Shown here piece after piece: positions 1 through 55,834 of a stretch of DNA of 64,000 nucleotides. Location of the stretch: NCBI GenBank assembly GCA_965655095.1, contig OZ296650.1, positions 38,130,001 to 38,194,000 of the forward strand. The letters are read 5' to 3'. Source of the stretch: Haplodiscus bocki. Its lineage: Eukaryota. The notes beneath the pieces are model-generated. The model was not told where the DNA came from and did not search any database. It saw only the letters and a program-made list of their open reading frames with translations. The translations under genes were made by a program, and so were the position numbers. Position 1 is the stretch's first letter; every line of letters begins with the position of its first letter.

Positions 1-493
1 CATCAATTAGCGAATCAACAACCCAATCACGTGGAAACAACTCTTCGGCCATTTTCACAACCTCTGAAAGCAACTTTTCATCTGGGCTATCAATGGTCAG
101 TTTAGTTTTGTAGTAATTCGATGTAAAATTTGGATACGATCCAAGTTTTAAATCCCTTTCTTCGAAGTGTTTGAACATTTGGTTGATCTGATCTGCAATT
201 TGAAGTTCGGATTTTGTGAGGTATAAGAACTTGGAATATCTTGAAGGACAATGTTCAGGAGCGGCAATAGTTTTTACTGCATGAATGGATTTTTTAAATA
301 TTTCCGGTACTCCTGGTAAGACAAAAACGTTGTTGACCTTGACTACGGGGTATTTTCCGAGGTAAACGAGCTTTGAGGTAGTAGGGATAATGGCCAGACG
401 GTAATGCGATTCTGTCATGTGAGATTTTCCTCCAAAGTAGCTTTCCACTATCTTGGCAACTTCTTCATTTAGTTCAACGTCATCACCAAATGC
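1..493 (-). CDS. FLAD1: FAD synthase (FLAD1-like) next coding exon, running off the left edge of the window
   Basis: Not in the ORF track. After acceptor CCTTTTTGTTTAG (AG at 495-494) it reads open for 164 codons: AFGDDVELNEEVAKIVESYFGG...KYPVVKVNNVFVLPGVPEIF...LYLTKSELQIADQI...LKLGSYPNFTSNYYKTKLTIDSPDE. This parallels my recollection of animal FLAD1 (AFGDEL...FPLVSVRNVYLFPGIPE...[20 protein letters not shown]). The PAPS-reductase-like domain is expected beyond the window. Confidence 0.93.
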
Positions 494-1929
494 CTAAACA
501 AAAAGGTGAAGTTAGGGGTCAAATTACGATTACACCCAATTTAACCCAAAGTTGGAGTTTTAGTTCGCCTCATTTTGGGTAGAGCTCGGCTATCAATGGA
601 AACTGATAAAAACCGAGCAAGGAGTTCCTTTTCAAGTTTGGATAAAAAGGACTATAGATTGACACAGAGGCGAAGCGAAGGCTTCGCAACACATGCTGAC
701 CAGAAAAACCGAACTTCCAAAGACACGAATTTTGGAAAACGTTTGGAATACCGGAGACCCTGAAAGTTATTTGATATCACGACGACGGACGTAATTGATA
801 CTTTAGAATTACAACAGCAACTGTCAATCAAGCGTTTCTTCGAAAAAAAACTATAATAATAGGTGGCCCATGCAAAACAAGGATACAGGTTTTGAATTTG
901 CAGTGCTAAAAATTGCTGACATTTGTAAATATACTTTGGAAAGTTCTTGCCTTGCTTGTCAATCATCCAGAATTATGAAACTTGTTCAAAAAGTAAAATG
1001 AAAAGTGCAACACTTTGGTGAAATAAGTCAATACAACTTTCATTATCTGAAACTAAAATGGTGATGTCACTTTCACACTTCTGTAAGATCTGAGCTGTCA
1101 ATGATGATGATTGACAGGCAAGATGTCAGACTCGAAAGAAATTTTATCGCTTTGTCTAATAATATCAACTTTTTGGTCACGTGTAGAGAATACCCGAAGT
1201 ACCTGCCACACTGTCTTATACTCAAAAACTTGACCCGTTAATCATGCCCTTTTCAGTCGTGCCTTTTTACAGTCTAATGCTTAACAGACGCGCACATTTT
1301 AACGCGCAAAAACAACAAGTACCTGCCAAAAGTCTTGAAAAAGGTCATTTTTGACCGACCGTCTACAACAGACCCCTACCCTATGATGACGTCAGAGAAC
1401 TCAAGTTTTGAACGAGAATAAAACTCGTAACCCGTATTAGTACAATTTCTGAAATTTCATTTCAGCATGTGTAAAAAAAACTTAAATCAAGTACGGGCAG
1501 TACTTCGAACTACTGCTGGAAAAACTTAATCAGCAACTGATCGTTTCTTTTGTTTTCTCTTCAATAAGAACTCCGTCAATTTTCACGGAAACGAAGCAAA
1601 TCGAAATGTTTGTGGCAATTTGTGGGACGAAAATATAAATCCATTGAGTAGCTTCACAAAAAGCTTGTCGATCATGTATGGCCTCCTTGCGGCACAAGTG
1701 GGCAGGCACGAGATTTCTCAGTGCGGCAAACAATACACGACAGGGACGAGAGAAAGGGGGCAGGATCTGCAGGCAACTTCAGGGACAGCAATAATCTTAT
1801 CACGACGGCGTGGCAAAAGTCCAGCTATCTCGAGCACCTCAGCAACTGTACGGCAAGAGGATAGAAGATCGAGGAACGATGACTTCCCCGACTTGGGATC
1901 ATACTGACCGAGGAGCGAACAGTATGAGG

Positions 1930-2132
1930 GGTAACCCATAGATAGCAAAAAGCCCTCGAACATTATCGAAAAAAACAAAGGCCGAAAACACACAAAAAAT
2001 TAATGGAAAACACTTATACGGGAAATGGGTAAGAACTGGAAAGAATTACATGATACAGCTCAAGACCAAGACAAGTGGAAAATAATGACAGGCCAAACGC
2101 ATGGCCCACATAACCACTTGAGAACAACATAG
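1930..2132 (+). mobile_element. 3'-terminal fragment of an RTE-type non-LTR retrotransposon ORF
   Basis: Reads ...KGRKHTKN*WKT / LIREMGKNWKELHDTAQDQDKWKIMTG..., resembling the RTE C-terminal GRP..W.....W.EL...AQDR..WR signature. Boundaries approximate. Confidence 0.55.
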
Positions 2133-2399
2133 GCGCTAAAGTGCTTAGCGAAAGGCTTGCAAACATACTCAAGCACCTAAATATGTCACTAACCAGGCGT
2201 TCAAGAGGTACCAGAAAGCATGCGGCAATACCCGGAGAGATAAGAAATCCGTTGACACTCCGCCGAAAAAAGACAAAAACTTCGGCAAAAAAGAAGACGA
2301 ACTAATTCTTGCGTAGCTAAAGAACAATGCGTAGCTAGAAAACAGTTGGTTCTATAAACTGCAAAAATTACGTAATAAAGTTCAATTCTTCGCGTTCAA

Positions 2400-3290
2400 C
2401 GAACAATAGCTACACATGAGAACATTATTGCTCTTCATTTCAATGATACAAATTCTGTTCGATCCTTATTTTTGGAATTATTTCAAACAATTAATGAACA
2501 AAAAAGGGAAAATATTCTCTTGCGTGATAATTACGAGCAACTTGAAAACGCAACAGACGACATGGTGAAGAGAGTGACCAAATTGTAACGGTATTCTTCT
2601 TACATGTGCTCAACTTTTCATGCAGTTCGTCATAGTGGTGAGTACCCGGAACGTAAAATAGTGAAAATTATCAGGTCAGTACAAAATCCAATTGAACCCT
2701 ACGACATTGTTGCTTGCCCTTACTACCAGGTAACGGCAAAACTAAGCCCATTATCGTGAAATTTTTAAGCAACCATCAACACGATAATAACTGGCAACAA
2801 CAGAATTTATTCTTTGATCCACAAAACAGGGAAAAACTCATATCAAGGAAAGATTGACCGAAACTGATCGAGATCTTCACAAATATTGTAGGAAAAAAGG
2901 ATCTGGTAACAGCTACCCACAAAAATCAAGTACGTGTAAATATATCTAGAAATGATAAATGGTTACCTGTCGATACTCGGAAGGTAGCTGATCTCAATGC
3001 AAACTAACGGTATATTGACCAGCCATATCAATGACTGGGATATGGGACGCCCGCCCAGTATAACAACTAAAGATGAGAAAACACCATATAAAAGAAATCG
3101 TCCAGAAGCTTTCAATTCTCCAACCAATGAAGTACAAAACGAAGTATCGAACCAAAATTACAAGTCGGACAAGCTCTGCTCTCTTATTGAGAAACTGTTC
3201 AGGTTAATGGTTGAAAACAATCTCTGCCGTCTAAAAAATGTAAACGAGGATGAAGGCAAAAATGACATGCAATCCAAGCAGTAAGGGAAC
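2400..3290 (+). pseudogene. LINE ORF1 remnant (coiled coil + RRM-like region); the part upstream of 3123 is present only in copy 1
   Basis: Conceptual translation across stops/frameshifts: ...ENILLRDNYEQLENATDDMVKRVTKL*RYSS...IEPYDIVAC(x)PLPGNGKTKPIIVKFL...HIKERLTETDRDL..., typical of CR1/L2-group ORF1 (LExYS, DIxxCHxL, PIIVKF, IxExLT). Confidence 0.7.
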
Positions 3291-6223
3291 AAAACGAGTG
3301 GCAGAATCATGAGAAAAAAACACGCCAAAGTTAAGCTCAAAATATAAAAATTGTGCTAGGCTTGAAGATACAGTCCCTAGATTCGATCATACAGAATTAA
3401 TATTACCTCTTGAAACTCTCCTGAAAAAACCTGAAGCCATAATGCTAACTGAAACATGGCGTACTGAAAACGATCCATCAACAAAACTAGATATCAACGG
3501 TTATCAGCACATTAAATCAAACACAAGATAAGGTATGAAGCGAAAATCAGGTGGTGTAGCATTCTATTTTAAGGGAGGCATAGAGTACTACACAATAATA
3601 GAATTCGAGACAAACATTGAGTGCTCAATTTGTCGAGCGGTACTGGAAAATAAAGTCACAAAAAAGTTTCTGCGTAATCTAGAGACCTCACTAATTAAAA
3701 CTGAAATCAAATTTTTGTAAAAGTGGAACACTTACGGCATTTTCTGAATTCTTTGAATGAAGCCTGATTTTTGGTGAATTTACAAGAGACACTTTCAAAA
3801 ATGAAAACAACCATATAAGAGTATGATAACTTATTGGGGGCATGGTTTCGAAATGAAAAATTTCTTACCAAGAAGAGTAACCCCAACATCAAAGAAATGT
3901 ATTGATTATATGACTGCAACTGAAGAACACAGAATAGAAACTCTGGAAATAACCAAAAGTGACCATTCTGCCCTGACTGCTGAACTAACGTTCACGTTGA
4001 AAAGGTGCAAACTATTGCACCTGTTAAAAAACGCGATTCCTAAATAATCCTAAAGGAAAAAAGAATTAAACCTTTTAGCTGGAACAACAATTGGAAATTA
4101 TGATGACGTGAATGCTGATTCGTATATGGCTGCACTGTCGAAAACTATTATAAACTGTGTGGACAAATAAGCTCCGCAGAAATGTTTAGCATTTTCTGTG
4201 AAACACATACTGCAAGTTAGATAACCAATAAGATAAAGAATGCCATTGTAAGAGATTGCCTGTTTAAACAATGGATGGGAAACCCTGATGAAGCGAATAG
4301 ATTGTTAAATAAAGTCTCGTAATATTGTGACAACAATGATTCGATAAGAAAAAGAAGCGAATACAATTTTCGTAAGCTCCGCAAAAATCCAACCCCGAAA
4401 CAGATCTACGAAACATTAAAAAACTAACAACTCACAAAATGACGACTTGAAACAATTACCGGACCTTGAAAAACTTGACAATTTTTTTCGTATATGTAGG
4501 CCCAACAGTGGCGAACAAGATCAAAAGTTGGCCCAATGTATGGAAAATTGAAAAACTGCAGTTTTCAATGGTACTGCAACCAACAAGCGAACAAAAAAAT
4601 TGCAAAAATTCAGGTCAAATGAAAAACAAAAAAGTGCTGGCTACATTGGAATCTCAAACGAAATCCTAAAATATTGTTCCCTAATTGTCGAACAAAATCT
4701 TTCAAAAATCATTAACAAATGCATCTTAAGAAATATTCCCTGACTGCTTGAAAGAAACTAAAGTATTGCCGTTACATAGAAGAAGCGATAAAAATCAACC
4801 TGGTAATAACAGACGGATCGGTAAACTGAGTCCATTGAGTAATGTTTTCGAAAAAGTTCTTTTGAAGCGAATGATAAAGTCTTGCGACAAACATGAAATA
4901 ATTTCAAGCATCCAGTCCGATTTAAGACCTAAAGCATCTTGCATCCATAATTGCAACTGTAAGAGTATATCAGAATTGAAATTGACAACAAAATCAACAG
5001 GTCAAGCGTGCTTCATTGATCTTATTAAGGCTTTTGATACGATTAACTATAAGATCTCACCAAAAAAAAGTTAGAAGCTTACGGCTTCAGAGGTAAATTT
5101 ATGAAACTTTTCGAAAATTACCTCCAAAACCGATTACAATATATCAACATTATTGATAAGTCATCGATTGAAAAAGCTATTGAATGTGGTATACCTCAAG
5201 GGTCAGTATTCGGATCTTCTCTATTCCTTTAATACAAATATGATCTTAGTACTACTCGCTCTGAAAGCAAAGTAACGTTGTTGGTAGATGACACTACGGT
5301 TATCAATGCTGGTAAAAGAATCGACTCCGTAGTCGGCAAGGACATTAAAAAATGACCATGTGGTTTGGCAAAAGCAAATTGACTTTCAATGCTGATAAAT
5401 GTGAAGCCATTCACTTCGGTAGAAGCCGACCCGCAACTATAGTAATGAAATATCAATAACTGGATTACAAACCAACTTGCAAAAATGCTGGACTTCACAT
5501 TGATCAAATACCTAGCATTCAGAGATCACAAAGACCACGTTGTAAAAAACAACAACAAGTTTTGCGGTTTATTTATCATGTGCGATATTTGTATCCGAGA
5601 AAGTGACCATTTATGTTTTATAATTCGTTTGCAAAATCGATAATGACGTATGACATCGATAATGACGTATGGTCTACTTATTTACGGAAAATCAGCGAAT
5701 TCAAACTTAGCAAACATCGACAATGTTCAGAGACGAAGTCTTCGTGCTATATTCTTCAAAAATACTATTCAATGCAGCAAATGATGTTCCGAAACAAAAT
5801 TAACACGATGGATGAGTTGTTCATCTAGGAGGTTGTACATAAAGTTTTCGGAGAACTCAGATTAGAGTCGCCATTGATATTGTTGAATTTTGAAGAAAAA
5901 TTAATGTTTTAGTGAGAAACAAGGTGGAACTCGAAGGGCTCTTCCCGCCAATTATTGCGAGAACTATGAAGAAAAAATAGTTTTCGGCAAACTCTTTGAT
6001 GAAGCCTATAATTGGCTGAAAGAGTTAAACCTCACTTCTTCCCTAATAAAAAGGATGACTGTACGACAGTTAAAAAACACCAGAATCTAATCTTATGATT
6101 TAAACATGGTTGACATTGAGGATCTGTTTTGCTTATATTACCAGAAAATTCTATTTCTCGAGACAGTCTGATGTGCTTTTTTAATATTTTGATACTGAGC
6201 AATGTTTGGCTAATTTACTTCCA

Positions 6224-6265
6224 GGGGCGCAGGCATTAAGAGCAATTATGCTCACTTTGCGTCCT
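6224..6265 (+). other. LINE 3'-UTR stem-loop (repeated in all 13 units)
   Basis: GGGGCGCA pairs with TGCGTCCT (two G-U pairs) and encloses a GAGCA-ATTA-TGCTC hairpin, ~65 nt upstream of the CTATTT x2 tail. Confidence 0.6.
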
Positions 6266-6881
6266 AATTGGGTGTGATTTGATAAAATCTCCGAAAAGAT
6301 TGGTTATGTATCTATACCCCACCGGATTAACTATTTCTATTTCTTCTTGCTTCACTGACTAAATGACATTGGCAGAGCATACAAATAGCATGAGTAATGA
6401 TAACTGGGATAAAGTACGATTTTCCCTCTAAAAGCACCATGTTTTTCAGCCATTGCAGCCTGTTTTCCGAAGGCCAGAACTTTTTGACTGTCAAAAAGAA
6501 AAGTTCAGCAGGGCTAATAACAACCTCGGGCAAAATATTTACAATTAAAATAGTTCCAATGGACCAATAAGTGAGGTAAGTGTCCCAATGTTAATGAAAG
6601 CAGAGGCGATTCACGAAAAGGAGTGGCTTTAACGTTTTCGTAACTTTTCCGACGAGACAGTTTTCGCAATAAACAAACCCCTTACCTATGCTTATGCTTC
6701 ACATTGGCAAACATACCACAGCACTTGAAAAAAGTTAGAAGTGCCATCGGAAAAGATTCACTTTACTTCAGAGAAAAACAAAAGGGCGCGAGAAATTGAG
6801 TATACAAGAAAAAGGCGTATCACCAGTAGTGTCAAAAAACTTCGCGTTTTTATCAAATTCAGCAGAAGTATAGATTTGTAT

Positions 6882-9800
6882 ACAAATGAAGTACAAAACG
6901 AAGTATCGAACCAAAATTACAAGTTGGACAAGCTCTGCTCTCTTATTGAGAAACTGTTCACGTTAATGGTTGAGAACAATCTCCTCCGTCCAAAAATACG
7001 TAAATGAGGAGAACGCAAAAATGACTTATGCAATCCAAGCAGTGAAAGAACAAAACGAGTGGCAGAATCATGAGAAAAAAACATGCCAAAATTAAGCTCA
7101 AAATAAATATAGTGTGCTAGGCTTGAAAATACAGTCCTTGAGATTCGATCATACAGAATTATTATTGCCTCTTAAAACTCTCCTGAATAAACCTGAAGCC
7201 ATAATGGTAACTGAATCATGGCGTACTGAAAATGATCCAATAACAAAACTAGATATCAACGGTTATCAGCACATCAAATCAAACACAAGATAAGGTATGA
7301 AGCGAAGATCAGGTGGTGTAGCATTGTATTTTAAGGGAGGCATAGAGTACTACACAATAATAGAAATCGAGACAAACATTGAGTGCTCAATTTGTCGAGC
7401 GGTACTGGAAAATAAAGTCACAAAAAAGTTTCTGCGTAATCTAGAGACCTCAATAATTGAAACTGAATTCAAATTTTTGTAAAAGTGGAAAACTTACGGC
7501 ATTTTTTTGAGATCTTTGAATGAAGTCTGATTTTTGGTGAATTTAACAAAGACACTTTCAAAAATGAAAACAACCATATAAGAGTATGATAACTTATTGG
7601 GGGCATGGTTTCGAAATAAAAAATTTCTTACCACGAAGAGTAACCCCAACATAAAAGAAATGTATTGATTATATGACTGCAACTGAAGAACACAGAATAG
7701 AAACTCAGGAAATAACCAAAAGTGACCATTTTGCCCTGACTGCTGAACTTACGTTCACGTTGAAAAAGTGCAAACCAACTGCACCTGTTAAAAAACGCGA
7801 TTCCTAAATAATCCTAAAGGAAAAAAAGCATTAAACCTTTTAGCTGGAACAACAAATGGAAATTATGATGACGTGAATGCTGATTCGTATATGGCTGCAC
7901 TGTCGAAAACTATTATAAACTATTTGCACAAATAAGCTGCGGAGAAATGTTTAGCACTTTCTGTAAAACACATACTGCAAGTTGGATAACCAATAAAAGA
8001 AAGAATGCCATTGTAAGAGATTGCCTGTTTAAACAATGGATGGGAAACCCTGATGAAGCGAATAGATTGTTATATAAAGTCTCGTAATATTGTGACAACA
8101 ATGATTCGATAAGAAAAAGAAGCGAATACAATTTTCGTAAGCTCCGCAAAAATCCAACCCCGAAACTGATCTACGAAACATTAAAAAACTAACAACTCAC
8201 AAAATGACGACTTGAAACAATTACCGGACCTTGAAAAACTTGACAATTTTTTTCGTATATGTAGGCCCAACATTGGCTCACAAGATCAAAAGTTGGCCCA
8301 ATGTATGGCAAATTGAAAAACTGCAGTTTTCAATGCTACTGCAACCAACACGCGAACAAAAAAATTGCAAAAATTCAGGTCAAATGAAAAACAAAAAAGT
8401 GCTGGCTACATTGGAATCTCAAACGAAATCCTAAAATGCTGTTCCCCAATTGTCGAACGAAATCTTTCAAAAGTCATTAACAAATGCATCTTAGGAAATA
8501 TTCCCTGACTGCTTGAAAGAAACTAAAGTATTGCCGTTACATAGAAGAAGCGATAAAAATCAACCTGGTAATTACAGACGGATCGGTTAACTGAGTCCAT
8601 TGAGTAAAGTTTTCGAAAAAGTTCTTTTGAAGCGAATGATAAAGTCTTGCGACAAACATGAAATAATTTCAAGCATCCAGTCCGATTTCAGACCTAAAAC
8701 ATCTTGCATCCATAATTGCAACTGTAAGAGTATATCAGAATTGAAATTGACAACAAAATCAACAGGTCAAGCGTGCTTCATTGATCTTATTAAGGCATTT
8801 GATTCGATTAACTATAAGATCTCACCATAAAAAATTAGAAGCTTACGGCTTCAGAGGTAAATTTATGAAACTTTTCGAAAAATACCTCCAAAACCGATTA
8901 CAATATATCAACATTATTGATAAGTCATCGATTGAAAAAGCTATTGAATGTGGTATACCTCAAGGGTCAGTATTCGGATCTTTTCTATTACTTTAATACA
9001 TAAATGATCTTAGTACTACTCGCTCTGAAAGCAAAGTAACGTTGTTGGTAGATGACAATACGGTTATCAATGCTGGTAAAAGAATCGACTCCGTAGTCCG
9101 CAAGGACATTAAAAATGACCATGTGGTTTGGCAAGAACAAATTGACTTTCAATGCTGATAAATGTGAAGCCATTCACTTCGGTAGAAGCCGACCCGCAAC
9201 TATAGTAATGAAATATCAATAACTGGATTACAAACCAACTTGCAAATATGCTGGACTTCACATTGATCAAGGACCTAGCATTCAGAGATCACAAAGACCA
9301 CGTTGTAAAAAACAACAACAAGTTTTGCGGTTTATTTATCATGTGCGACATTTGTATCCCAGAAAGTGCCTATTTATGTTTTATAATTCGTTTGCAGAAT
9401 CGATAATGACGTATGAAATCGATAATGACGTATGGTCTACTTATTTACGGAAAATCAGCGAATTCAAACTTAGCAAACATCGATAATGTTCAGAGACGAA
9501 GTCTTCGTGCTATATTCTTAAAAAAAATACTATTCAATGCAGCAAATGATGTTCCGAACAAAATTAACATGATGGATGAGTTGTTCATCTAGGAGGTTGT
9601 ACATAAAGTTTTCGGAGAACTCAGATTAGAGTCGCCATTGATATTGTTGAATTTTGAAGAAAAATTAATGTTTTAGTGAGAAACAAGGTGGAACTCGAAG
9701 GGCTCTTCCCGCCAATTATTGCGAGAACTATGAAGAAAAAATAGTTTTCGGCAAACTCTTTGATGAAGCCTATAATTGGCTGAAAGAGTTAAACCTCACT

Positions 9801-10106
9801 TCTTCCCTAATAAAAAGGATGACTGTACGACAGTTAAAAAACACCAGAATCTAATCTTATGATTTAAACATGGTTGACATTGAGGATCTGTTTTGCTTAT
9901 ATTACCAGAAAATTCTATTTCTCGAGACAGTCTGATGTGCTTTTTTAGTATTTTGATACTGAGCAATGTTTGGCTAATTTAATTCCAGGGGCGCAGGCAT
10001 TAAGAGCAATTATGCTCACTTTGCGTCCTAATTGGGTGTGATTTGATAAAATCTCCGAAAAGATTGGTTATGTATCTATACCCCACCGGATTAACTATTT
10101 CTATTT
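6882..10106 (+). mobile_element. Array unit 2: 5'-truncated dead LINE (APE+RT)
   Basis: Near-identical to 3123-6342; followed by the shared 3' flank. Confidence 0.88.
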
Positions 10107-10646
10107 CTTGTTGCTTCACTGACTAGATGACATTGGCAGAGCATACAAATAGCATGAGTAATGATAACTGGGATAAAGTACGATTTTCCCTCTAAAAGTA
10201 CCATGTTTTTCAGCCATTGCAGCCTGTTTTCCGAAGGCCAGAACTTTTTGACTGTCAAAAAGAAACGTTCAGCAGGGCTAATAACAACCTCGGGCAAAAT
10301 ATTTACAATTAAAATAGTTCCAATGGACCAATAAGTGAGGTAAGTGTCCCAATGTCAATGAAAGCAGAGGCGATTCACGAAAAGGAGTGGTTTTAACGTT
10401 TTCGTAACTTTTCCGACGAGACAGTTTTCGCAATAAACACACCCCTTACCAATGCTTGTGCTTCACATTGGCAAACATACCACAGCACTTGAAAAAAGTT
10501 AGAAGTGCCAACGGAAAAGATTCACTTTACTTCAGAGAAGAACAAAAGGGCGAGAAAAATTGAGTATACCAGAGAAAGGCGTATCACCAGTAGTGTCAAA
10601 AAACTTCGCGTTTTTATCAAAATCAACAGGAAGTATAGATTTGTAT

Positions 10647-13600
10647 ACAAATGAAGTACAAAACGAAGTATCGTACCAAAATTACAAGTTGGACAAGCTC
10701 TGCTCTCTTATTGAGAAACTGTTCACGTTAATGGTTGAGAACAATCTCCGCCGTCCAAAAATACGTAAATGAGGAGAACGCAAAGATGACTTATGCAATC
10801 CAAGCAGTGAAAGAACAAAACGAGTGGCAGAATCATGAGAAAAAACATGCCAAAGTTAAGCTCAAAATAAATGTAGTGCGCTAGGCTTGAATATGCAGTC
10901 CTTGAGATTCGATCATACAGAATTATTATTGCCTCTTAAAATTCTCCTGAATAAACCTGAAGCCATAATGGTAACTGAATCATGGCGTACTGAAAATGAT
11001 CCAATAACAAAACTAGATATCAACGGTTATCAGCACATCAAATCAAACACAAGATAAGGTATGAAGCGAAGATCAGGTGGTGTAGCATTCTATTTTAAGG
11101 GAGGCATAAAGTACTACACAATAATAGAATTCGAGACAAACATTGAGTGCTCAATTTGTCGAGCGGTACTGGAAAATAAAGTCACAAAAAAGTTTCTGGA
11201 TAATCTAGAGACCTCACTAATTGAAACTGAAATCAAATTTTTGTAAAAGTGGAACACTTACGGCATTTTTTGAATTCGTTGAATGAAGCCTGATTTTTGG
11301 TGAATTTACAAGAGACACTTTCAAAAATGAAAAAAACCATATAAGAGTATGATAACTTATTGGGGGCATGGTTTCGAAATGAAAAATTTCTTACCAAGAA
11401 GAGTAACCAACATCAAAGAAATGTATTGATTCTATGACTGCAACTGAAGAACACAGAATAGAAACTCTGGAAATAACCAAAACTGACCATTTTGCCCTGA
11501 CTGCTGAACTAACGTTCACGTTGAAAAAGTGCAAACCAAGTGCACCTGTTAAAAAACGCGATTCCTAAATAATCCTAAAGGAAAAAAGAATTAAGCCTTT
11601 TAGCTGGAACAACAAATGGAAATTGACGTGAATGCTGATTCGTATATGGCTGCACTGTCGAAAACTATTATAAATTGTGTGGACAAATAAGCTCCGGAGA
11701 AATATTATCACTTTCTGTAAAACACATACTGCAAGTTGGATAACCAATAAAATAAAGAATGCCATTGTAAGAGATTGCCTGTTTAAACAATGGATGGGAA
11801 ACCCTGATGAAGCGAATAGATTGTTATATAAAGTCTCGTAATATTGTGACAACAATGATTCGATAAAAGAAGCGAATACAATTTTCGTAAGCTCCGCAAA
11901 AATCCAACCCCGAAACAGATCTACGAAACATTAAAAAACTAACAACTCACAAAATGACGACTTGAAACAATTACAGGACCTTGAAAAACTTGACAATTTT
12001 TTTCGTATATGTAGGCCCAACATTGGCGAACAAGATCAAAAGTTGGCCCAATGTATGGAAAATTGAAAAACTGCAGTTTTCAATGGTACTGTAACCAACA
12101 AGCCAACAAAAAAATTGCAAAATTTCAGGTCAAATGAAAAACAAAAAAGTGCTGGCTACATTGGAATCTCAAACGAAATCCTAAAATGTTGTTCCCCAAT
12201 TGTCGAACAAAATCTTTCAAAAGTCATTAACAAATGCATCTTAGGAAATATTCCCTGACTGCTTGAAAGAAACTAAAGTACTGCCGTTACATAGAAGAAG
12301 CGATAAAAATCAACCTGGTAATTACAGACGGATCGGTTAACTGAGTCCATTGAGTAAAGTTTTCGAAAAAGTTTTATTGAAGCGAATGATAAAGTCTTGC
12401 GACAAACATGAAATAATTTCAAGCATCCAGTCCGATTTCAGACCTAAAACATCTTGCATCCATAATTGCAACTGTAAGAGTATATCAGAATTGAAATTGA
12501 CAACAAAATCAACAGGTCAAGCATGCTTCATTGATCTTATTAAGGCATTTGATACGATTAACTATAAGATCTCACCAAAGAAAATTAGAAGCTTACGTCT
12601 TCAGAGGTAAATGAAACTTTTCGAAAATTACTTCCAAAACCGATTACAATATATCAACATTATTGATAAGTCATCGAGTGAAAAAGCTATTGAATGTGGT
12701 CTACCTCAAGGGTCAGTATTCGGATCTTTTCTATTCCTTTAATACATAAATGATCTTAGTACTACTCGCTCTGAAAGCAAAGTAACGTTGTTGGTAGATG
12801 ACACTACGGTTATCAATGCTGGTAAAAGAATCGACTCCGTAGTCGGCAAGGACATTAAAAAATGACCATGTGGTTTGGCAAAAGCAAATTGACTTTCAAT
12901 GCTGATAAATGTGAAGCCATTCACTTCGGTAGAAGCCGACCCGAAACTATAGTAATGAAATATCAATAACTGGATTACAAATCAACTTGCAAATATGCTG
13001 AACTTCACATTGATGAAATACCTAGCATTCAGAGACCACATAGACCACGTTGTAAAAAAACAACAAATTTTGCGGTTTATTTATCATGTGCGACATTTGT
13101 ATCCGAGAAAGTGCCTATTTATGTTTTATATTTCGTTTGCAGAATCGATAATGACGTATGAAATCGATAATGACGTATGGTCTACTTATTTACGGAAAAT
13201 CAGCGAATTCAAACTTAGCAAACATCGATAATGTTCAGAGACGAAGTCTTCGTGCTATACTCTTCAAAAAAAATACTATTCAATGCAGCAAATGATGTTC
13301 CGAAACAAAATTAACACGATGGATGAGTTGTTCATCTAGGAGGTTGTACATAAAGTTTTCGGAGAACTCAGATTAGAGTCGCCATTGATATTGTTGAATT
13401 TTGAAGAAAAATTAATGTTTTAGTGAGAAACAAGGTGGAACTCGAAGGGCTCTTCCCGCCAATTATTGCGAGAACTATGAAGAAAAAATAGTTTTCGGCA
13501 AACTCTTTGATGAAGCCTATAATTGGCTGAAAGAGTTAAACCTCACTTCTTCCCTAATAAAAAGGATGACTGTACGACAGTTAAAAAACACCAGAATCTA

Positions 13601-43930: not shown

Positions 43931-44470
43931 CTTGTTGCTTCACTGACTAGATGACATTGGCAGAGCATACAAATAGCATGAGTAATGATAACTGCGATAA
44001 AGTACGATTTTCCCTCTAAAAGTACAATGTTTTTCAGCCATTGCAGCCTGTTTTCCGAAGGCCAGAACTTTTTGACTGTCAAAAAGAAACGTTCAGCAGG
44101 GCTAATAACAACCTCGGGCAAAATATTTACAATTAAAATAGTTCCAATGGACCAATAAGTGAGGTAAGTGTCCCAATGTTAATGAAAGCAGAGGCGATTC
44201 ACGAAAAGGAGTGGTTTTAACGTTTTCGTAACTTTTCCGACGAGACAGTTTTCGCAATAAACACACCCCTTACCAATGCTTGTGCTTCACATTGGCAAAC
44301 ATACCAGAGCACTTGAAAAAAGTTAGAAGTGCCAACGGAAAAGATTCACTTTACTTCAGAGAAAAACAAAAGGGCGCGAAAAATTGAGTATACCAGAGAA
44401 AGGCGTATCACCAGTAGTGTCAAAAAACTTCGCGTTTTTATCAAATTCAACAGGAAGTATGGATTTGAAT

Positions 44471-47400
44471 ACCAATGAAGTACAAAACGAAGTATCGAAC
44501 CAAAATTACAAGTTGGACAAGCTCTGCTCTCTTATTGAGAAACTGTTCACGTTAATGGTTGAGAACAATCTCCGCCGTCCAAAAATACGTAAATGAGGAG
44601 AACGCAAAAATGACTTATGCAATCCAAGCAGTGAAAGAACAAAACGAGTGCCAGAATCATGAGAAAAAACATGCCAAAGTTAAGCTCAAAATAAAGGTAG
44701 TGCGCTGGGCTTGAATATACAGTCCTTGAGATTCGATCACACAGAATTAATAATGCCTCTTGAAACTCTCCTGAATAAACCTGAAGCCATAATGCTATCT
44801 GAAACAAGCCGTACTGAAAATGATCCAATAACAAAACTAGATATCAACGGTTATCAGCACATTAAATCAAACACAAGATAAGGTATGAAGCGAAAATCAG
44901 GTGGTGTAGCACTCTATTTTAAGGGAGGCATAGAGTACTACACAATAATAGAATTCGAGACAAACATTGAGTGCTCAATTTGTCGAGCGGTACTGGAAAA
45001 TAAAGTCACAAAAAAGTTTCTGCGTAATCTAGAGACCTCAATAATTGAAACTGAATTCACATTTTTGTAAAAAAGGAAAACTTACGGCATTTTTTTAAAT
45101 CTTTGAATGAAGCCTGATTTTTGGTGAATTTACAAGAGACACTTTCAAAAATGAAAAAAAACCATATAAGAGTATGATAACTTATTGGGGGCATGGTTTC
45201 GAAATGAAAAATTTCTTACCAAGAAGAGTAACCCCAACATCAAAGAAATGTATTGATTATATGACTGCAACTGAAGAACACAGAATAGAAACTCTGGAAA
45301 TAACCAAAACTGACCATTTTGCCCTGACTGCTGAACAAACGTTCACGTTGAAAAAGTGCAAACTAACTGCACCTGTTAAAAAACGCGATTCCTAAATAAT
45401 CCTAAAGGAAAAAAAGCATTAAACCTTTTAGCTGGAACAACAAATGGAAATTATGATGACGTGAATGCTGATTCGTATATGGCTGCACTGTCGAAAACTA
45501 TTATAAACTATTTGCACAAATAAGCTGCGGAGAAATGTTTAGCACTTTCTGTAAAACACATACTGCAAGTTGGATAACCAATAAAATAAAGAATGCCATT
45601 GTAAGAGATTGCCTGTTTAAACAATGGATGGGAAACCCTGATGAAGCGAATAGAATGTTATATAAAGTCTCGTAATATTGTGACAACAATGATTCGATAA
45701 GAAAAAGAAGCGAATACAAGTTTCGTAAGCTCCGCAAAAATCCAACCCCGAAACAGATCTACGAAACATTAAAAAACTAACAACTCACAAAATGACGACT
45801 TGAAACAATTACCGGACCTTGAAAAACTTGACAATTTTTTTCGTATATGTAGGCCCAACATTGGCGAACAAGATCAAAAGTTGGCCCAATGTATGGAAAA
45901 TTTAAAAACTGCAGTTTTCAATGGTACTGTAACCAACAAGCCAACAAAAAAATTGCAAAATTTCAGGTCAAATGAAAAACAAAAAAGTGCTGGCTACATT
46001 GGAATCTCAAACGAAATCCTAAAATGTTGTTCCCCAATTGTCGAACAAAATCTTTCAAAAGTCATTAACAAATGCATCTTAGGAAATATTCCCTGACTGC
46101 TTGAAAGAAACTAAAGTATTGCCGTTACATAGAAGAAGCGATAAAAATCAACCTGGTAATTACAGACGGATCGGTTAACTGAGTCCATTGAGTAAAGTTT
46201 TCGAAAAAGTTCTTTTGAAGCGAATGATAAAGTCTTGCGACAAACATGAAATAATTTCAAGCATCCAGTCCGATTTCAGACCTAAAACATCTTGCATCCA
46301 TAATTGCAACTGTAAGAGTATATCAGAATTGAAATTGACAACAAAATCAACAGGTCAAGCGTGCTTCATTGATCTTATTAAGGCATTTGATACGATTAAC
46401 TATAAGATCTCACCAAAAAAATTGGAAGCTTACGGCTTCAGAGTTAAATTTATGAAACTTTTCGAAAACTACCTCCAAAACCGATTACAATATATCAACA
46501 TTATTGATAAGTCATCGAGTGGAAAAGCTATTGAATGTGGTCTACCTCAAGGGTCAGTATTCGAATCTTTTCTATTCCTTTAATACATAAATGATCTTAG
46601 TACTACTCGCTCTGGAAGCAAAGTAACGTTGTTGGTAGATGACACTACGGTTATCAATGCTGGTAAAAGAATCGACTCCGTAGTCCGCAAGGACATTAAA
46701 AATGACCATGTGGTTTGGCAAGAACAAATTGACTTTCAATGCTGATGAATGTGAAGCCAATCACTTGGGTAGAAGCCGACCCGAAACTATAGTAATGAAA
46801 TATCAATAACTGGATTACAAATCAACTTGCAAATATGCTGGAATTCACATTGATGAAATACCTAGCATTCAGAGACCACATAGACCACGTTGTAAAAAAA
46901 ACAACAACTTTTGCGGTTTATTTATCATGTGCGATATTTGTATCCGAGAAAGTGACCATTTATGTTTTATATTTCGTTTGCAAAATCGATAATGACGTAT
47001 GACATCGATAATGACGTATGGTCTACTTATTTACGGAAAATCAGCGAATTCAAACTTAGCAAACATCGACAATGTTCAGAGACGAAGTCTTCGTGCTATA
47101 TTCTTCAAAAATACTATTCAATGCAGCAAATGATGTTCCGAAACAAAATTAACACGATGGATGAGTTGTTCATCTAGGAGGTTGTACATAAAGTTTTCGG
47201 AGAACTCAGATTAGAGTCGCCATTGATATTGTTGAATTTTGAAGAAAAATTAATGTTTTAGTGAGAAACAAGGTGGAACTCTAAGGGCTCTTCCCGCCAA
47301 TTATTGCGAGAACTATGAAGAAAAAATAGTTTTCGGCAAACTCTTTGATGAAGCCTATAATTGGCTGAAAGAGTTAAACCTCACTTCTTCCCTAATAAAA

Positions 47401-47691
47401 AGGATGACTGTGCGACAGTTAAAAAACACCAGAATCTAATCTTATGATTTAAACATGGTTGACATTGAGGATCTGTTTTGCTTATATTACCAGAAAATTC
47501 TATTTCTCGAGACAGTCTGATGTGCTTTTTTAGTATTTTGATACTGAGCAATGTTTGGCTAATTTAATTCCAGGGGCGCAGGCAATAAGCGCAATTATGC
47601 TCACTTTGCGTCCTAATTGGGTGTGATTTGATAAAATCTCCGAAAAGATTGGTTATGTATCTATACCCCACCGGATTAACTATTTCTACTT
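44471..47691 (+). mobile_element. Array unit 12: 5'-truncated dead LINE
   Basis: Near-identical to unit 10. Confidence 0.88.
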
Positions 47692-48230
47692 CTTGTTGCT
47701 TCACTGACTAGATGACATTGGCAGAGCATACAAATAGCATGAGTAATATAACTGGGATAAAGTACGATTTTCCCTCTAAAAGTACCATGTTTTTCAGCCA
47801 TTGCAGCCTGTTTTCCGAAGGCCAGAACTTTTTGACTGTCAAAAAGAAACGTTCAGCAGGGCTAATAACAACCTCGGGCAAAATATTTACAATTAAAATA
47901 GTTCCAATGGACCAATAAGTGAGGTAAGTGTCCCAATGTTAATGAAAGCAGAGGCGATTCACGAAAAGGAGTGGTTTTAACGTTTTCGTAACTTTTCCGA
48001 CGAGACAGTTTTCGCAATAAACACACCCCTTACCAATGCTTGTGCTTCACATTGGCAAACATACCACAGCACTTGAAAAAAGTTAGAAGTGCCAACGGAA
48101 AAGATTCACTTTACTTCAGAGAAGAACAAAAGGGCGAGAAAAATTGAGTATACCAGAGAAAGGCGTATCACCAGTAGTGTCAAAAAACTTCGCGTTTTTA
48201 TCAAATTCAACAGGAAGTATGGATTTGAAT

Positions 48231-51200
48231 ACCAATGAAGTACAAAACGAAGTATCGAACCAAAATTACAACTTGGACAAGCTCTGCTCTCTTATTGAGA
48301 AACTGTTCAAGTTAATGGTTGAGAACAATCTCCGCCGTCCAAAAATACGTAAATGAGGAGAACGCAAAAATGACTTATGCAATCCAAGCAGTGAAAGAAC
48401 AAAACGAGTGGCAGAATCATGAGAAAAAACATGCCAAAGTTGAGCTCAAAATAAATGTAGTGCGCTAGGCTTGAATATACAGTCCTTGAGATTCGATCAT
48501 ACACAATTAATATTGCCTCTTGAAACTCTCCTGAATAAACCTGAAGCCATAATGCTATCTGAAACATGCCGTACTGAAAATGATCCAATAACAAAACTAG
48601 ATATCAACGGTTATCAGCACATTAAATCAAACACAAGATAAGGTATGAAGCGAAAATCAGGTGGTGTAGCACTCTATTTTAAGGGAGGCATACTACACAA
48701 TAATAGAATTCGAGACAAACATTGAGTGCTCAATTTGTCGAGCGGTACTGGAAAATAAAGTCACAAAAAAGTTTCTGCGTAATCTAGAGACCTCAATAAT
48801 TGAAACTGAATTCGAAGTTTTGTAAAAGTGGAAAACTTACGGCATTTTTTGAATTCTTTGAATGAAGTCCGATTTTTGGTGAATTTACCAGAGACACTTT
48901 CAAAAATGAAAAAAACCATATAAGAGTATGATAACTTATTGGGGGCATGGTTTCGAAATGAAAAATTTCTTACCAAGAAGAGTAACCCCAACACCAAAGA
49001 AATGTATTGATTATATGACTGCAACTGAAGAACACAGAATAGAAACTCTGGAAATAACCAAAACTGACCATTTTGCCCTGACTGCTGAACTAACGTTCAC
49101 GTTGAAAAAGTGCAAACTAACTGCACCTGTTAAAAAACGCGATTCCTAAATAATCCTAAAGGAAAAAAGAATTAAACCTTTTAGCTGGAACAACAATTGG
49201 AAATTATGATGACGTGAATGCTGATTCGTATATGGCTGCACTGTCGAAAACTATTAAAAAACTGTGTGGACAAATGAGCTCCGGAGAAATGTTTAGCACT
49301 TTCTGTAAAACACATACTGCAAGTTGGATAACCAATAAAATAAAGAATGCCATTGTAAGAGATTGCCTGTTTAAACAATGGATGGGAAACCCTGATCAAG
49401 CGAAAAGATTGTTATATAAAGTCTCGTAATATTGTGACAACAATGATTCGATAAGAAAAAGGAGCGAAAAGAATTTTCGTAAGCTCCGCAAAAATCCAAC
49501 CCCGAAACAGATCTACGAATTATTAAAAACTGACAACTCACAAAATGACGACTTGAAACAATTACCGGACCTTGAAAAACTTGAAGACTTTTTTAATATC
49601 TGTAGGCCCAACATTGGCAAACAAGATCAAAAGTTGGCCCAATGTATGACAAGTTGAAAAACTGCAGTTTTCAATGGTACTGCAACCAACAAACGAACAA
49701 AAAAATTGCAAAATTTCAGGTCAAATGAAAAACAAAAAAGTGTGGCTACATTGGAATCTCAAACGAAATCCTAAAATGTTGTTGCCAATTGTCGAACAAA
49801 ATCTTTCAAAAGTCATTAACAAATGCATCTTAAGAAATATTCCCTGACGGCTTGAAAGAAACTAAAGTATTGCCGTTACATAGAAGAAGCGATAAAAATC
49901 AACCTGGTAATTACAGACGGATCGGTAAACTGAGTCCATTGAGTAATGTTTTCGAAAAAGTTCTTTTGAAGCGAATGATAAAGTCTTGCGACAAACATGA
50001 AATAATTTCAAGCATCCAGTCCGATTTCAGACCTAAAACATCTTGCATCCATAATTGCAACTGTAAGAGTATATCAGAATTGAAATTGACAACAAAATCA
50101 ACAGGTCAAGCGTGCTTCATTGATCTTATTAAGGCATTTGATACGATTAACTATAAGATCTCACCAAAAAAATTAGAAGCTTACGGCTTCAGAGGTAAAT
50201 TTATGAAAATTTTCGAAAAATACCTCCAAAACCGATTACAATATATCAACATTATTGATAAGTCATCGAGTGAAAAAGCTATTGAATGTGGTATACCTCA
50301 AGGGTCAGTATTCGGATCTTTTCTATTACTTTAATACATAAATGATCTTAGTACTACTCGCTCTGAAAGCAAAGTAACGTTGTTGGTAGATGACACTACG
50401 GTTATCAATGCTGGTAAAAGAATCGACTCCGTAGTCCGCAAGGACATTAAAAAATGACCATGTGGTTTGGCAAGAACAAATTGACTTTCAATGCTGATAA
50501 AAGTGAAGCCATTCACTTCGGTAGAAGCCGACCAGAAACTATAGTAATGAAATATCAATAACTGGATTACAAATCAACTTGCAAATATGCTGGACTTCAC
50601 ATTGATCAAATACCTAGCATTCAGAGACCACATAGACCACGTTGTAAAAAAAACAACAAGTTTTGCGGTTTATTTATCATGTGCGACATTTGTATCCGAG
50701 AAAGTGCCTATTTATGTTTTATAATTCGTTTGCAAAATCGATAATGACGTATGAAATCGATAATGACATATGGTCTACTTCTTTACGGCAAATCAGCGAA
50801 TTCAAACTTAGCAAACATCGACAATGTTCAGAGACGAAGTCTTCTTGCTATATTCTTCAAAAAAAATACTATTCAATGCAGCAAAAGATGTTCCGAAACA
50901 AAATTAACACGATGGATGAGTTGTTCATCTAGGAGGTTGTACATAAAGTTTTCGGAGAACTCAGATTAGAGTCGCCATTGATATTGTTGAATTTTGAAGA
51001 AAAATTAATGTTTTAGAGAGAAACAAGGTGGAACTCGAAGGGCTCTTCCCGCCAATTATTGCGAGAACTATGAAGAATAAAAAGTCTTTGGCAAACTCTT
51101 TGATGAAGCCTATAATTGGCTGAAAAAGTTAAACCTCACTTCTTCCCTAATGAGAACGATGACTGTACGAGAGTTTAGAAACACCTGAATCTAATCTTAT

Positions 51201-51446
51201 GAATTATACACGGTTGACATTGAGGGTCCGTTTTGCTTATATTACCAGAAAATTCTATTTCTCGAGACAGTCTGATGTGCTTTTTTAGTATTTTGATACT
51301 GAGCAATGTTTGGCTAATTTAATTCCAGGGGCGCAGGCATTGAGAGCAATTATGCTCACTTTGCGTCCTAATTGGGTGTGATTTGATAAAATCTCCGAAA
51401 AGATTGGTTATGTATCTATACCCCACCGGATTAACTATTTCTATTT
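48231..51446 (+). mobile_element. Array unit 13 (terminal): 5'-truncated dead LINE
   Basis: Carries the longest open RT fragment (49852-50334, 160 aa); 3' part has private variants and continues into unique sequence after 51963. Confidence 0.88.
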
Positions 51447-54400
51447 CTTGTTGCTTCACTGACTAGATGACATTGGCAGAGCATACAAATAGCATGAGTA
51501 ATGATAACTGGGATAAAGTACGATTTTCCCTCTAAAAGTACCATGTATTTCAGCGATTTCAGCCTGTTTTCCGAAGGCCAGAACATTTTGACTGTCAAAA
51601 AGAAACGTTCAGTAGGGCTAATAACAACCTCGGGCAAAATATTTACAATTAGAATAGTTCCAATGGACCAATAAGTGAGGTAAGTGTCCCAATGTTAATG
51701 AAAGCAGAGGCGATTCACGAAAAGGAGTGGTTTTAACGTTTTCGTAACTTTTCCGACCAGACAGTTTTCGCAATAAACACACCCCTTACCAATGTTTGTG
51801 CTTCACATTGGCAAACATACCACAGCACTTGAAAAGTTAGAAGTGCCAAGCGGAAAAGATTTACTTTACTTCAGAGAAAAACAAAGAGGCGCGAAAAAAT
51901 GAGTGTACCAGAGAAGGGCGTATCACCAAAATTGTCAAAAAACTTCGCGTTTATCAAATTCAAAAGGGAAAGTTGTTTTTATTGACCGAAGTTTTTTTCG
52001 CATTTCGAAAGATTCTTTCTCCACGAAAACGTTTCAGAAGTTGAACTTGGTCGAGCGTTCTCGAGCACTCTGGTTGGAGTTTCAGAGCTCTTCTGAAAAC
52101 TCCGGAAAAAATACAAAACTTTTCCAGAAATAAATGATGAAGAAAATACATAAATTAAAGAAAACAGGTGAGTTCGCGGAAAAGACTGGCTGGATGCTTG
52201 GATTATCTTACCTGCATTTATTTACCTTAAAGGCCGATGATGCAAAAATTGAAAACAATAGGCTTTTTCTCGAAATTCAAACTCTTTTCGTCTAAAAACC
52301 ACATAATGGATTTTATCATCAACAACTCAGTCGAAATTTTCTCTCCCTTGCAGAATGCTATTGGGCATTGATACACTTCTTTGGCTCCTTGGATCCGGAA
52401 AATGAGAGCAGAAATGCAGAAAAGTGCGATTAGTATAGACCTTTCTCAATTATCAAACAGACCTTTCGCCGAAAACTATCAGGTTGATTCCCTCCATCAA
52501 GTTGTCACTTAGCAGCTATCGACATGTAAAGACTTATTCGATAATTCTGTTTTTCTTCCTTGTTACTGAAAATTGACAGGCCGCGTAGTGCTTTCATAAT
52601 TATTATCGATTTCCAAACTTTTCTCGCCAGAATCACCAGCTTCATTTCTTCCGTCAAAATGTAACACAGCCGCTTTTTAGTTGTATAGGCTCATTTGATA
52701 AAACTGCTATTTTTTCTCTTTGCTCCAGGAAAGGAATGAGCCGAAGATGCCAAAAAATGCCAATAGTAATTTTGATCGACCTTCCAATCAAATTGAGTCT
52801 CCCATCAAAATCTCAAGCACCAACTACTTAATTGTACCGAGTTTTAGGAATTATATGACGAGTTTGGCTCCAGGCATCAAAGTCCTGAAAGGTGGAAAGT
52901 AAAACATTACTTCAGTATGTTTTTCCTTTCATGATCAATCATATACGTCTCACAAATCATCCTGCACATTTTTTATTCAAGATGTCGTCGACAGTTTTCC
53001 ACTTGTAGAGAAGGTTTCGATCAGAGAATCATCGAGTTTGCTACACAGAACCTCCGGCAACTGACTGGGAGTAAAAGCCACAATGTTCGAGTTGGTAGTG
53101 ATATCCCACGATATTCGAATTTCAAACCCAATATCCGCGTAAACTACCGAAGAGATTCCTTCCACAAAATTCTCAATCGTGAACACTCTAGTTGCGCAGA
53201 GAGAATCCAAAAAGATGTCAGAAAAAAACCTTCAATTCGTTTCAATTTCTCACGGTAATCGAAGAGACGTCTCAGAAACCACCGGATGGACGTTATGCAT
53301 CAAGAAGCCAATCGACAGCTATCAATTTTAAAAAATTATTCAGTGATGCGTATAACCCAGTTTGCTCCTTGGATATAAAACATGATTGGCCAAAACTGCA
53401 AAAAAAAGTTCCATTATAAGTGATTTGTGATTGAGTTTCAGCATTAAAATTCTCCGAAACTACGGACTGGATTGGTGACATTGACCACTCATGAGAAGAA
53501 TTTCCTGGCATTCGAAGCTCGAAAACTCCAAAAAACGAAAAAAATATGTTTTCATATTTCTCGACAATCAAACTCATAATTCTTTAAAATTATCGGCTTG
53601 ATCTCTTCTATTAAGTTGGCAATAGACAGCATTTGGTTTACGAAATGTCATTCAAAATTTGATTTTTGAGTTTTTCTGCTTGCGGTGTATTCATGACAGG
53701 CCGATAATTCCGAAAAGTGCCGCAAATTTGACTTTTCTATAGACTCATGAATATGCTTCTCCGAAACGATCGGCACCATTTCTTCCACGAAGGTGTCAGT
53801 CGACCATTTTCTCTTCATTGAAGCGCAATTTTTTGGTGCATCAACCCGGTCAAGATAACTAGACAGGCCGGAGTTTACCAAAAATTCTTTAGTATTTAAT
53901 TCTCTTAATTTTCAACCACATTTTCCTCTAAACTACGATGTTAGTTTTTCCATCAGAAGTCTCCTTTTACTAATAAATTTTGCAAGAGATATTCGGATGT
54001 TAAAGTAATCCATTTTGTTCCCCGGCATCGGAAAACTGCTGGGCGGATGTTGCCACACGTGTGATTAGCAATGATCGTTCTCTATTTTCGATGCCATGTA
54101 TCCCCGAGACTATCGGCCCGATTTCTTCGATCAAGATCCTTTCGCTAAATTTTAGTTGCAGAAGGGTAATATTTGTGTATACTTTTGATTTGGTTCCTTG
54201 TATCTAGAAAATAATTGACTAAAAAAGCCAAAAAACGTATTTAGTAAATAGTCCTCTGAATATTCCAAGTTTATTTTCCAAATTTATCGTATGGACCACT
54301 TCAATCAATGTCTCCGTCAACGGTCTTCAGATAATATTCTTTTCAATTCTTAGAAATGCATGGAAGACCTGGCTGGAAGAAAATGCAGGTATTGATGATT

Positions 54401-55573
54401 TTTCTCGGTTATCAAAATTATTTTCTGCAAAACTATATGTTGGGTTCGGTTGAACAAAGGCGTTATCGACAGTTGTTTGCAGAGGTTAATACTCCACCCG
54501 GTTCTTTCAATCTTGACGGGAAACTGATAGTCTCAAACTGGCAATTCTCGACACTGGCAAGCGTAAACTGCGATTAGATGTTCCGTTTTTCAAAATGGCA
54601 TTTTAGCGAAAGTGCAGCGATTTTGGTCAAAATTATTTGATGAATTTCCGATCTATCATTTCTGCCCCGCCGTAGACGTAAAATATCTTAGATCCGCAAA
54701 TTTTCAGTGCCAATTTCAAACCAATCGGTTGTATTTGGCAATATTCCAGTATTCAATATTGACAGAATTCAGCATTCAATCAGCTATTTCAATAAAACCT
54801 TCCGAATTGTTTTTATTCTCCATTTGCAATTCAATTTAAAATAAACTTTGGCAGGACTGTTCACGAATTCTGCCGCGAAAAACTGCGTGTCTAACTTGGT
54901 CAGCGAATGAAGTTTCCTTTATTTCTGGTTTCATTTTCATGATTTCCAGTTCAAGCTGCTACATTTTTTTCCGAAGACATTTCCATGGTTTGTGCAAAGT
55001 AAGAAACTTCCAAATCGAGTTCTTTCCAATTTTCGCAACGATTTGTTTGGCTTAGCTCGTCACTGCAGTTTCTTTTCTGGATTCTGCCGTCATTGCATGT
55101 AAAAAGGAGGTTATCACTCAATTCAGCTTGACTTCCAGGTGGCTTTCTTCGAATCAAATGATTTTTTGGTTATGTGAAAAATAGTTTGATAAAAAGTACA
55201 TTTAAATGCTTCGTTATTACCTCTGCTTTTACAACATTTGCACTTTATCAAAATCGTTCAAAAAATTCAGTTCGAGGGAGGATAGTAGGGACAAGCGGTT
55301 AATTTTTAACTCCTCGTGGAACGTCAAGGCACTTGCGGAGGGAGGAAAAAAGGACTTAGTTCTTCCGACACAATTTCCAAGCTGTTGGAGGGTTCACTTC
55401 TAGAAAATGGCCGTTTAACTAGTTTTCACCTATCATGGTAACTTTAACCAGACCAAATACGTATGATTTACTGATCTGCATCAAAATTTTGATAGTTGAC
55501 CAAAATTACTAGGTCGCACTTTTACACAGCACTGGAGGAGAGTGTTATCTTCAGGGAAAACTTTCAATCTAAC

Positions 55574-55834
55574 CTCGGCAACAGCTTCAAACGTGACATC
55601 ATCGGCAGTTGGTCCGATTCCTCCGGAAGTGACGACATAATCGAAGAGAGAAGAAAATGTAGAGACTTGTTCACGGATCTCTTTCAGGTCGTCACCCACA
55701 ACAGTGATACGCTTAGTCTCAAGACCCCACTCTGAAAACAATTTCACAGCCAAGTTTGAGTTGCTGTCAACGACACGTCCGTTCAAAATCTCATCCCCAA
55801 TGACAATCAACCCAACTGACAGCTGTCGTGACAT
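55574..55834 (-). CDS. FLAD1: FAD synthase (FLAD1-like) coding exon, N-terminal part of the molybdopterin-binding/CinA-like domain
   Basis: Translates MSRQLSVGLIVIGDEILNGRVVDSNS...VVGDD...VVTSGGIGPTADDVTFEAVAE, matching the GDEIL, DxNS and GGIGPTxDD motifs. Donor GAG|GTTAGA at 55574/55573. An acceptor-like TTCTTTTTAG lies 16 nt upstream of the ATG (exon would start at 55850), so the true 5' end is unresolved. Confidence 0.93.

Follow-up and report, generated by a model that had tools for sequence, protein, structure and literature searches.

The window studied here is a stretch of 64,000 nucleotides (G000:C3:38130001-38194000) from the genome assembly of Haplodiscus bocki (1.5 Gb, 6,626 contigs), and it carries, on its minus strand, a FLAD1-type flavin adenine dinucleotide (FAD) synthase gene whose first intron is occupied to 88.7% by a tandem array of thirteen kilobase-sized units. 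The explanation that best accounts for this arrangement, and which is held to be very probable, is that of a single FLAD1 gene within whose intron 1 a long interspersed nuclear element (LINE), together with a piece of its flanking DNA, was amplified as DNA. Positions are those of the window unless otherwise indicated, and the coordinates of the features are collected in the table below.

The FAD synthase gene has four coding exons, which when joined amount to 1,449 nt (482 codons plus the stop) with no internal stop, and GT..AG borders are found at all of its introns. The left window edge cuts the gene; 20 kb beyond this edge were inspected, and exons 3 and 4 were located 1.5-2.5 kb past position 1. 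Exon 1 matched the Pfam domain MoCF_biosynth (PF00994) over profile positions 2-80 of 144 (E 2.2e-22), and alignment with full-length homologues showed the remainder of this domain to continue into exon 2. The frame of exon 2 opens at 493 with AFGDDVELNEE... and includes a match to FLAD1_M (PF24102; profile positions 3-76 of 78, E 2.9e-18), and the protein-atlas neighbours were PAPS_reduct throughout. With the domain order MoCF_biosynth, FLAD1_M and PAPS_reduct, the predicted product is a FLAD1-type FAD synthase, and both flavin mononucleotide (FMN) adenylyltransferase activity and essentiality would be expected of the gene purely by homology.

Intron 1 makes up 94% of the 58.4-kb coding span, introns 2 and 3 measuring 1,444 and 383 bp. 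On the minus strand it is bordered by GT at 55573-55572 and AG at 495-494, with canonical splice sites and a good pyrimidine tract at the acceptor. In an alignment that included six homologues, of which five are full-length (491-518 aa), the end of exon 1 (...TFEAVAE) abuts the start of exon 2 (AFGE...) without a gap. A peptide search of the whole 1.5-Gb genome matched exon 1 and exon 2 exactly once each; therefore, no paralogue could supply the other half of either, which rules out that the two exons belong to separate paralogues. Three relatives, referred to as A, B and C, were available as host contigs in public metagenome-style assemblies (exon 1 identity of 82%, 58% and 60%, respectively), and in all three the intron lies at the identical codon boundary, in phase 0 and with GT..AG borders. 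Intron 1 is evidently an old, conserved phase-0 intron within the N-terminal molybdopterin-binding-like domain. Moreover, the comparison of exon 1 with that of relative A gave a nonsynonymous divergence (dN) of 0.096 and a saturated synonymous divergence (dS) of ~3.1; with a dN/dS of 0.03, exon 1 has therefore been maintained as coding sequence.

The window is free of N, and repeated 20-mers occupy 3.1-51.9 kb of it at a spacing of ~3,760 bp. Units were counted by a BLAST of one unit against the window, which returned 12 full and two complementary part-units over 3123-51967. The array thus delimited is 48,845 bp long, and its units, which measure 3,750-3,765 bp, share 96.5-100% identity. Subtraction of 12 units leaves an intron of ~9,970 bp, which means that the array enlarged the intron 5.5-fold. 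Units 2-4 and 6-8 differ over 12.1 kb by only one mismatch and one 2-bp indel, and units 9/10 and 11/12 are 99.7-99.8% identical; from these near-identical blocks it follows that the array last grew through the duplication of two blocks, one of four units and one of two, in agreement with unequal exchange. Head-to-tail units of kilobase size, an extent of tens of kilobases and higher-order blocks, by which macrosatellites and megasatellites are recognized, are all present here. A reading of unit 5 as a clean two-parent crossover hybrid was also tried and rejected, the unit being a mosaic that is mainly unit 9-like with a unit 1-like patch.

Each unit is composed of ~3,225 bp of LINE sequence, namely its 3' part, and ~540 bp of flank DNA. 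More than 45 dispersed LINE matches with 72-83% identity were found in the genome, and their variable 5' starts and common 3' end at unit position ~3225 are the usual LINE pattern. Aligned to positions 2321-6344, the dispersed copies (74-80% identity) reach 800 bp beyond the left array edge, and these 5' 800 bp of the LINE (2321-3122), which the array does not include, are present a single time here. The final ~540 bp of the unit are covered by none of the dispersed copies; the 529-bp flank (6352-6880) has 13 occurrences in the genome, all within the FLAD1 intron array, and the last of them (51449-51967) passes into unique intron DNA. Similarity to reverse transcriptase was detected on the plus strand of the unit, with RVT_1 at E 8.3e-6 on a 79-aa fragment, a value under the Pfam cut-off owing to decay, while tblastn of the LINE against RVT_1-bearing open reading frames (ORFs) of relatives gave E 1.6e-15 and 4.6e-10. 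An endonuclease-like region upstream of the reverse transcriptase, in the right place and order, gave only a weak match (E 0.22) with motifs visible by eye and no Pfam match. No open frame of at least 150 aa was present in the nine dispersed copies examined, and the frames are broken in all units. Judged from these traces, the element is a decayed LINE (non-long-terminal-repeat retrotransposon).

A preliminary description of this stretch had identified the FAD synthase, proposed an in-frame FEAVAE-AFG join over 55,080 bp, and named an array of 13 LINE-derived units, filling ~89% of the intron, as the cause of its size. The identity is borne out by the three domains; the join by the single-copy exons, the gap-free homologue alignment and the equal intron position and phase in the three relatives; and the 13.0 units, their share of the intron, the 5.5-fold enlargement and the ~9,970 bp left after collapse were recomputed alike. 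The LINE derivation of the unit stands for its ~3,225 bp of LINE and fails for the ~540 bp of unique flank.

The array very probably arose as follows. One ~4-kb LINE inserted into intron 1, antisense to the gene; a 3.76-kb segment, which begins at LINE position ~800 and extends ~540 bp past the LINE 3' end, was then tandemly duplicated; unequal exchange between misaligned units increased the copy number; and the two-unit and four-unit block duplications, as the most recent events, led to the 13 units of the 55-kb intron, nine units and a 40-kb intron being found in a second assembly. The gene would be transcribed through the array and spliced from 55574 to 493. At the duplication junction, microhomology amounts to a few bases at most. 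A dead LINE and its flank were thus amplified at the DNA level in an ordinary manner, and neither the kind of element nor the mechanism is new.

Features of the FLAD1 locus of Haplodiscus bocki (window positions, except for exons 3 and 4, which lie beyond the left window edge)
Feature	Position	Strand	Description
FLAD1 coding exon 1	55834..55574	-	ATG at 55834; 87 aa, MSRQ...TFEAVAE; first half of MoCF_biosynth (molybdopterin-binding-like) domain
Intron 1	494..55573	-	55,080 bp, GT..AG, phase 0
Unique intron DNA, array to exon 1	51968..55573		outside repeated 20-mers
Tandem array	3123..51967	+	13.0 units of ~3.76 kb each; unit = LINE positions ~800-4020 plus ~540 bp flank
Near-identical 12.1-kb block, first copy	8446..20562	+	units 2-4 plus edges
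Near-identical 12.1-kb block, second copy	23481..35595	+	units 6-8
Founder LINE copy	2321..6344	+	~4.0 kb, decayed, antisense to FAD synthase gene
Non-LINE flank, first copy	6345..6886	+	present in every unit
Unique intron DNA, exon 2 to LINE	494..2320		20-mers unrepeated; no Rfam family; no notable ORF
FLAD1 coding exon 2, window part	1..493	-	second half of MoCF domain plus FLAD1_M; 71 further bases past left window edge
FLAD1 exon 3	G000:C3:38128273-38128484	-	PAPS_reduct PF01507, E 2.9e-6, profile positions 1-47
FLAD1 exon 4	G000:C3:38127479-38127889	-	PAPS_reduct PF01507, E 1.2e-15, profile positions 95-173

The intron was also found in a second assembly of Haplodiscus bocki, the 97,314-bp contig ctg80512 (ENA ERZ26859043), in which the ORF products of exon 1 and exon 2 are both present and of which 60.9 kb was tiled from five overlapping loci with no conflicts. 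The ATG and exon 2 codon 26 lie 40,385 bp apart in this contig and 55,416 bp apart in the window, which is 15,031 bp more, and the array of the contig consists of 9.0 units in an intron 1 of 40,049 bp. The units match window units 1, 2/6, 3/7, 4/8, 9, 10, 11 and 12, the four-unit block (units 5-8; 15.03 kb) being absent. The unique flanks of the two assemblies differ at one site in ~15 kb, and the units of ctg80512 have ~42 alignment columns with letters found in no window unit; because of these private letters, the contig is taken to represent another haplotype or individual and not a re-assembly of one molecule. The comparison of 13 with nine units rests on two assemblies, in which collapse or expansion of a near-perfect block is possible; copy-number polymorphism of the array, which the preliminary description had thought probable, is supported but not proven by it, truly allelic variation being the probable reading. 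Whichever unit count holds, the array exists and gives the intron a length of no less than 40 kb.

Comparison of the orthologous intron in relatives, which had been suggested as a check, revealed an identical position and widely different sizes. In relative A, the closest found, intron 1 is 1,365 bp long and without an array. That of relative B (21,075 bp) contains transposon ORFs and one 1.61-kb tandem duplication, and it grew mainly through dispersed insertions. In relative C (31,114 bp), an array of 1,433-bp period starts 3.6 kb into the intron and stops 2.3 kb short of exon 2, which would amount to ~25.2 kb if it is continuous across the 13 kb outside the sequence covered. No shared DNA was detected by blastn among the introns of the four species, and the repeat units of B and C had no protein similarity to five transposon ORFs. 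Two lineages have independently had more than 80% of intron 1 filled by unrelated arrays, with 3.76-kb units in Haplodiscus bocki and, if continuous, 1.43-kb units in relative C. Kilobase-scale tandem duplication occurs at all four FLAD1 loci examined, and it is tentatively read as something common to these genomes at large and not peculiar to intron 1. That kilobase-unit tandem amplification has struck FLAD1 intron 1 recurrently in the clade is considered quite improbable; if it were true beyond the general duplication habit, a locus-specific cause would be implied, for instance selection for the length of the first intron, or replication/transcription conflict due to the promoter-proximal position of the intron.

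Further observations were made at the loci of the relatives. In relative A (ENA ERZ25074608 ctg181275, L021:14500-19000), the last FLAD1 exon is present twice owing to a 3,012-bp tandem duplication, and the two copies (14751-15161 and 17763-18173) are 82% and 80% identical to exon 4 of Haplodiscus bocki. The 21-kb intron of relative B and its upstream flank carry endonuclease- and reverse transcriptase-bearing ORFs of other LINE-like elements (L020:5457-6689, L020:12313-13455 and L019:3018-3758). In relative C (ENA ERZ25071366 ctg21496l; L022:13938-20324 and L024:1-5610, with L023 from a second sample), shortened variants of ~813 bp occur near the array end. The exon 2 equivalent of relative C is also split by an extra intron of ~1.9 kb (L024:7921-10366), with residues 1-68 at 7921-8127 and residues 59-175 at 10013-10366, and this intron is absent in Haplodiscus bocki, A and B.

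Within the array of Haplodiscus bocki, a 19-bp motif, AATCGATAATGACGTATGA, is doubled at 9398-9434 and equivalent spots in just seven of the 13 units, and the same site is interrupted by 9 inserted bases in unit 2 of the second assembly, which marks a small indel-prone spot within the unit. Upstream of the start codon, the minus strand has a pyrimidine run with a terminal AG at 55835-55860, 18-25 bases 5' of the ATG, and there may be an intron in the 5' untranslated region with a non-coding exon further upstream. Still further upstream of the FAD synthase gene, the minus strand contains a pair of neighbouring open frames (188 and 227 aa) at 62703-63968, where GC content and GC skew rise. An Rfam scan of the window returned no families.

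Several points weigh against the explanation of a single gene spliced across an amplified array. The four public runs (one study) in which the locus is represented consist of genomic DNA contigs, with introns and exons covered alike, as inspected for exons 2-4 and flanks; no splice joints were found at the exon borders in these contigs, the listed joints sitting in repeats and not being GT..AG, and a protein library search gave no transcript-derived protein of Haplodiscus bocki. A 12.1-kb near-perfect repeat is, moreover, a structure that assemblers expand or collapse, and either 13 or nine units could be an assembly error; the right-edge copy is too diverged for base-level placement of the breakpoint; and the absence of a function is deduced from decay and from the lack of an array in relative A. 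The splicing from 55574 to 493 across the array is a strong inference. The contrary reading, that exons 1 and 2 are not joined in the mRNA, would make exon 1 a stranded remnant or derive the enzyme from exons 2-4 or 3-4 via an internal promoter or trans-splicing, so that the array need not be transcribed. In human FAD synthase, the PAPS-reductase domain by itself synthesizes FAD, and a natural isoform without the N-terminal domain exists (PMC3546728, PMC6017331); exon 2 also has an in-frame ATG at codon 26. Such a reading is nevertheless quite improbable, in that exon 1 is intact, begins with an ATG at the conserved domain start, is the sole genomic copy of this half-domain and shows strong constraint (dN/dS 0.03) against relative A, the intron has canonical splice sites and a good pyrimidine tract, and two relatives retain an intact exon 1 over introns of 21 kb and 31 kb. 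The FAD-forming PAPS-reductase domain lies wholly downstream of intron 1, and the essential activity might therefore be obtained even if the array were not transcribed.

An assembly artefact in the copy number, by which the chromosome assembly duplicated the four-unit block (true number nine) or the second assembly collapsed it, leaving no polymorphism, is unlikely while still having a real chance. The near-perfect match of units 2-4 and 6-8 would be expected from it, unit 5 has no private letter, and the two assemblies differ by precisely the four-unit block; however, at least seven distinct unit variants, 2-3.5% apart, are present in both assemblies, which secures the array itself, the private letters of the second contig point to another haplotype or individual, and false tandem duplication within a contig is unusual. 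Retention of the array for a function, whether as a source of small RNAs that target the LINE family, in a chromatin or regulatory role, or as a long first intron delaying expression, has very little probability. The long intron 1 of relative B, the unrelated array of ~25 kb that takes up most of intron 1 in relative C and the likeness of the units would agree with it, but in relative A, the closest found, the intron is 1.4 kb long and without an array, the arrays of Haplodiscus bocki and relative C have no common sequence, unit likeness is expected after recent unequal exchange, the LINE frames are destroyed with no Rfam match, and kilobase tandem duplications at all four FLAD1 loci point to a general genome property. 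The array is most likely a passenger without its own function. The idea that the LINE retrotransposed into itself again and again, head to tail, in the manner of telomeric or R1-type tandem elements has next to no chance: the units are mostly LINE and in a single orientation, but no copy has an open reading frame, the identical 529 bp in each unit are found nowhere else in the genome, and all units begin at LINE position ~800, the missing 5' 800 bp being present once, upstream of the array. The array-only flank and the single unamplified 5' end exclude it as the source of the array; since every unit carries the unique flank and a fixed internal LINE start, growth is ascribed to DNA-level tandem duplication and unequal exchange, which returns to the explanation preferred here.

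The difference between 13 and nine units in the two assemblies and the size variation of the orthologous intron among relatives, one of which has an array of independent origin, are new facts. The birth of a macrosatellite can be read at this locus, where the founder LINE is still recognizable along with the 5' end that was not amplified, the flank that was, the two array edges and the most recent block duplications. As the array lies in the sole copy of a gene for FAD synthesis, it offers a natural test of the intron repeat load tolerated by a constitutively needed gene. These findings also suggest that introns, and the genome as a whole, have gained length in this lineage through tandem duplication on the kilobase scale.

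The eukaryotic two-domain FAD synthase FLAD1 (PMC3546728, PMC6941110, PMC4908180) has the N-terminal molybdopterin-binding-like, FLAD1 middle and C-terminal PAPS-reductase parts in the same order as the 482-aa protein predicted here, whereas the exon 2 region is merely 35-45% identical to the best homologues from outside the clade. Human tandem arrays with units of more than 2 kb have been catalogued, several of them within a gene intron, and other human megasatellites have repeating transposon-piece patterns, with expansion ascribed to unequal crossing over and most of them in copy-number-variable regions (Warburton et al. 2008, PMC2588610; DXZ4 in PMC3081327). The novelty implied by the preliminary description is weak in view of these intronic and transposon-patterned arrays (PMC2588610). 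Human megasatellites and macrosatellites, including transposon-patterned and long-terminal-repeat arrays and DXZ4, share with the present array the kilobase units, the extent of tens of kilobases, the higher-order blocks, the combination of transposon and other DNA, and growth by unequal crossing over; their copy number varies, and here two assemblies differ. The animal lineage and the element are different, the founder insertion, the unamplified 5' end and both edges are readable here, and the host is a single-copy core metabolic gene.

The term "intron gigantism", which the preliminary description had used, is applied in the literature to introns of hundreds of kb to Mb, such as those of satellite-filled Drosophila Y-linked genes (PMC6508621, PMC11207136), and does not suit introns of 55,080 bp and 40,049 bp. 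What the intron shares with those of kl-3 and kl-5, two Y-linked fertility genes of Drosophila, is that tandem repeats and not dispersed insertions dominate its length, and that transcription would have to cross the repeats. The kl-3 and kl-5 introns, however, reach hundreds of kb to Mb, are made up of short-unit satellites and belong to testis-specific genes with a dedicated expression programme, whereas the intron of Haplodiscus bocki is 55 kb (or 40 kb) long, has a 3.76-kb unit and lies in a gene for which ubiquitous expression is expected.

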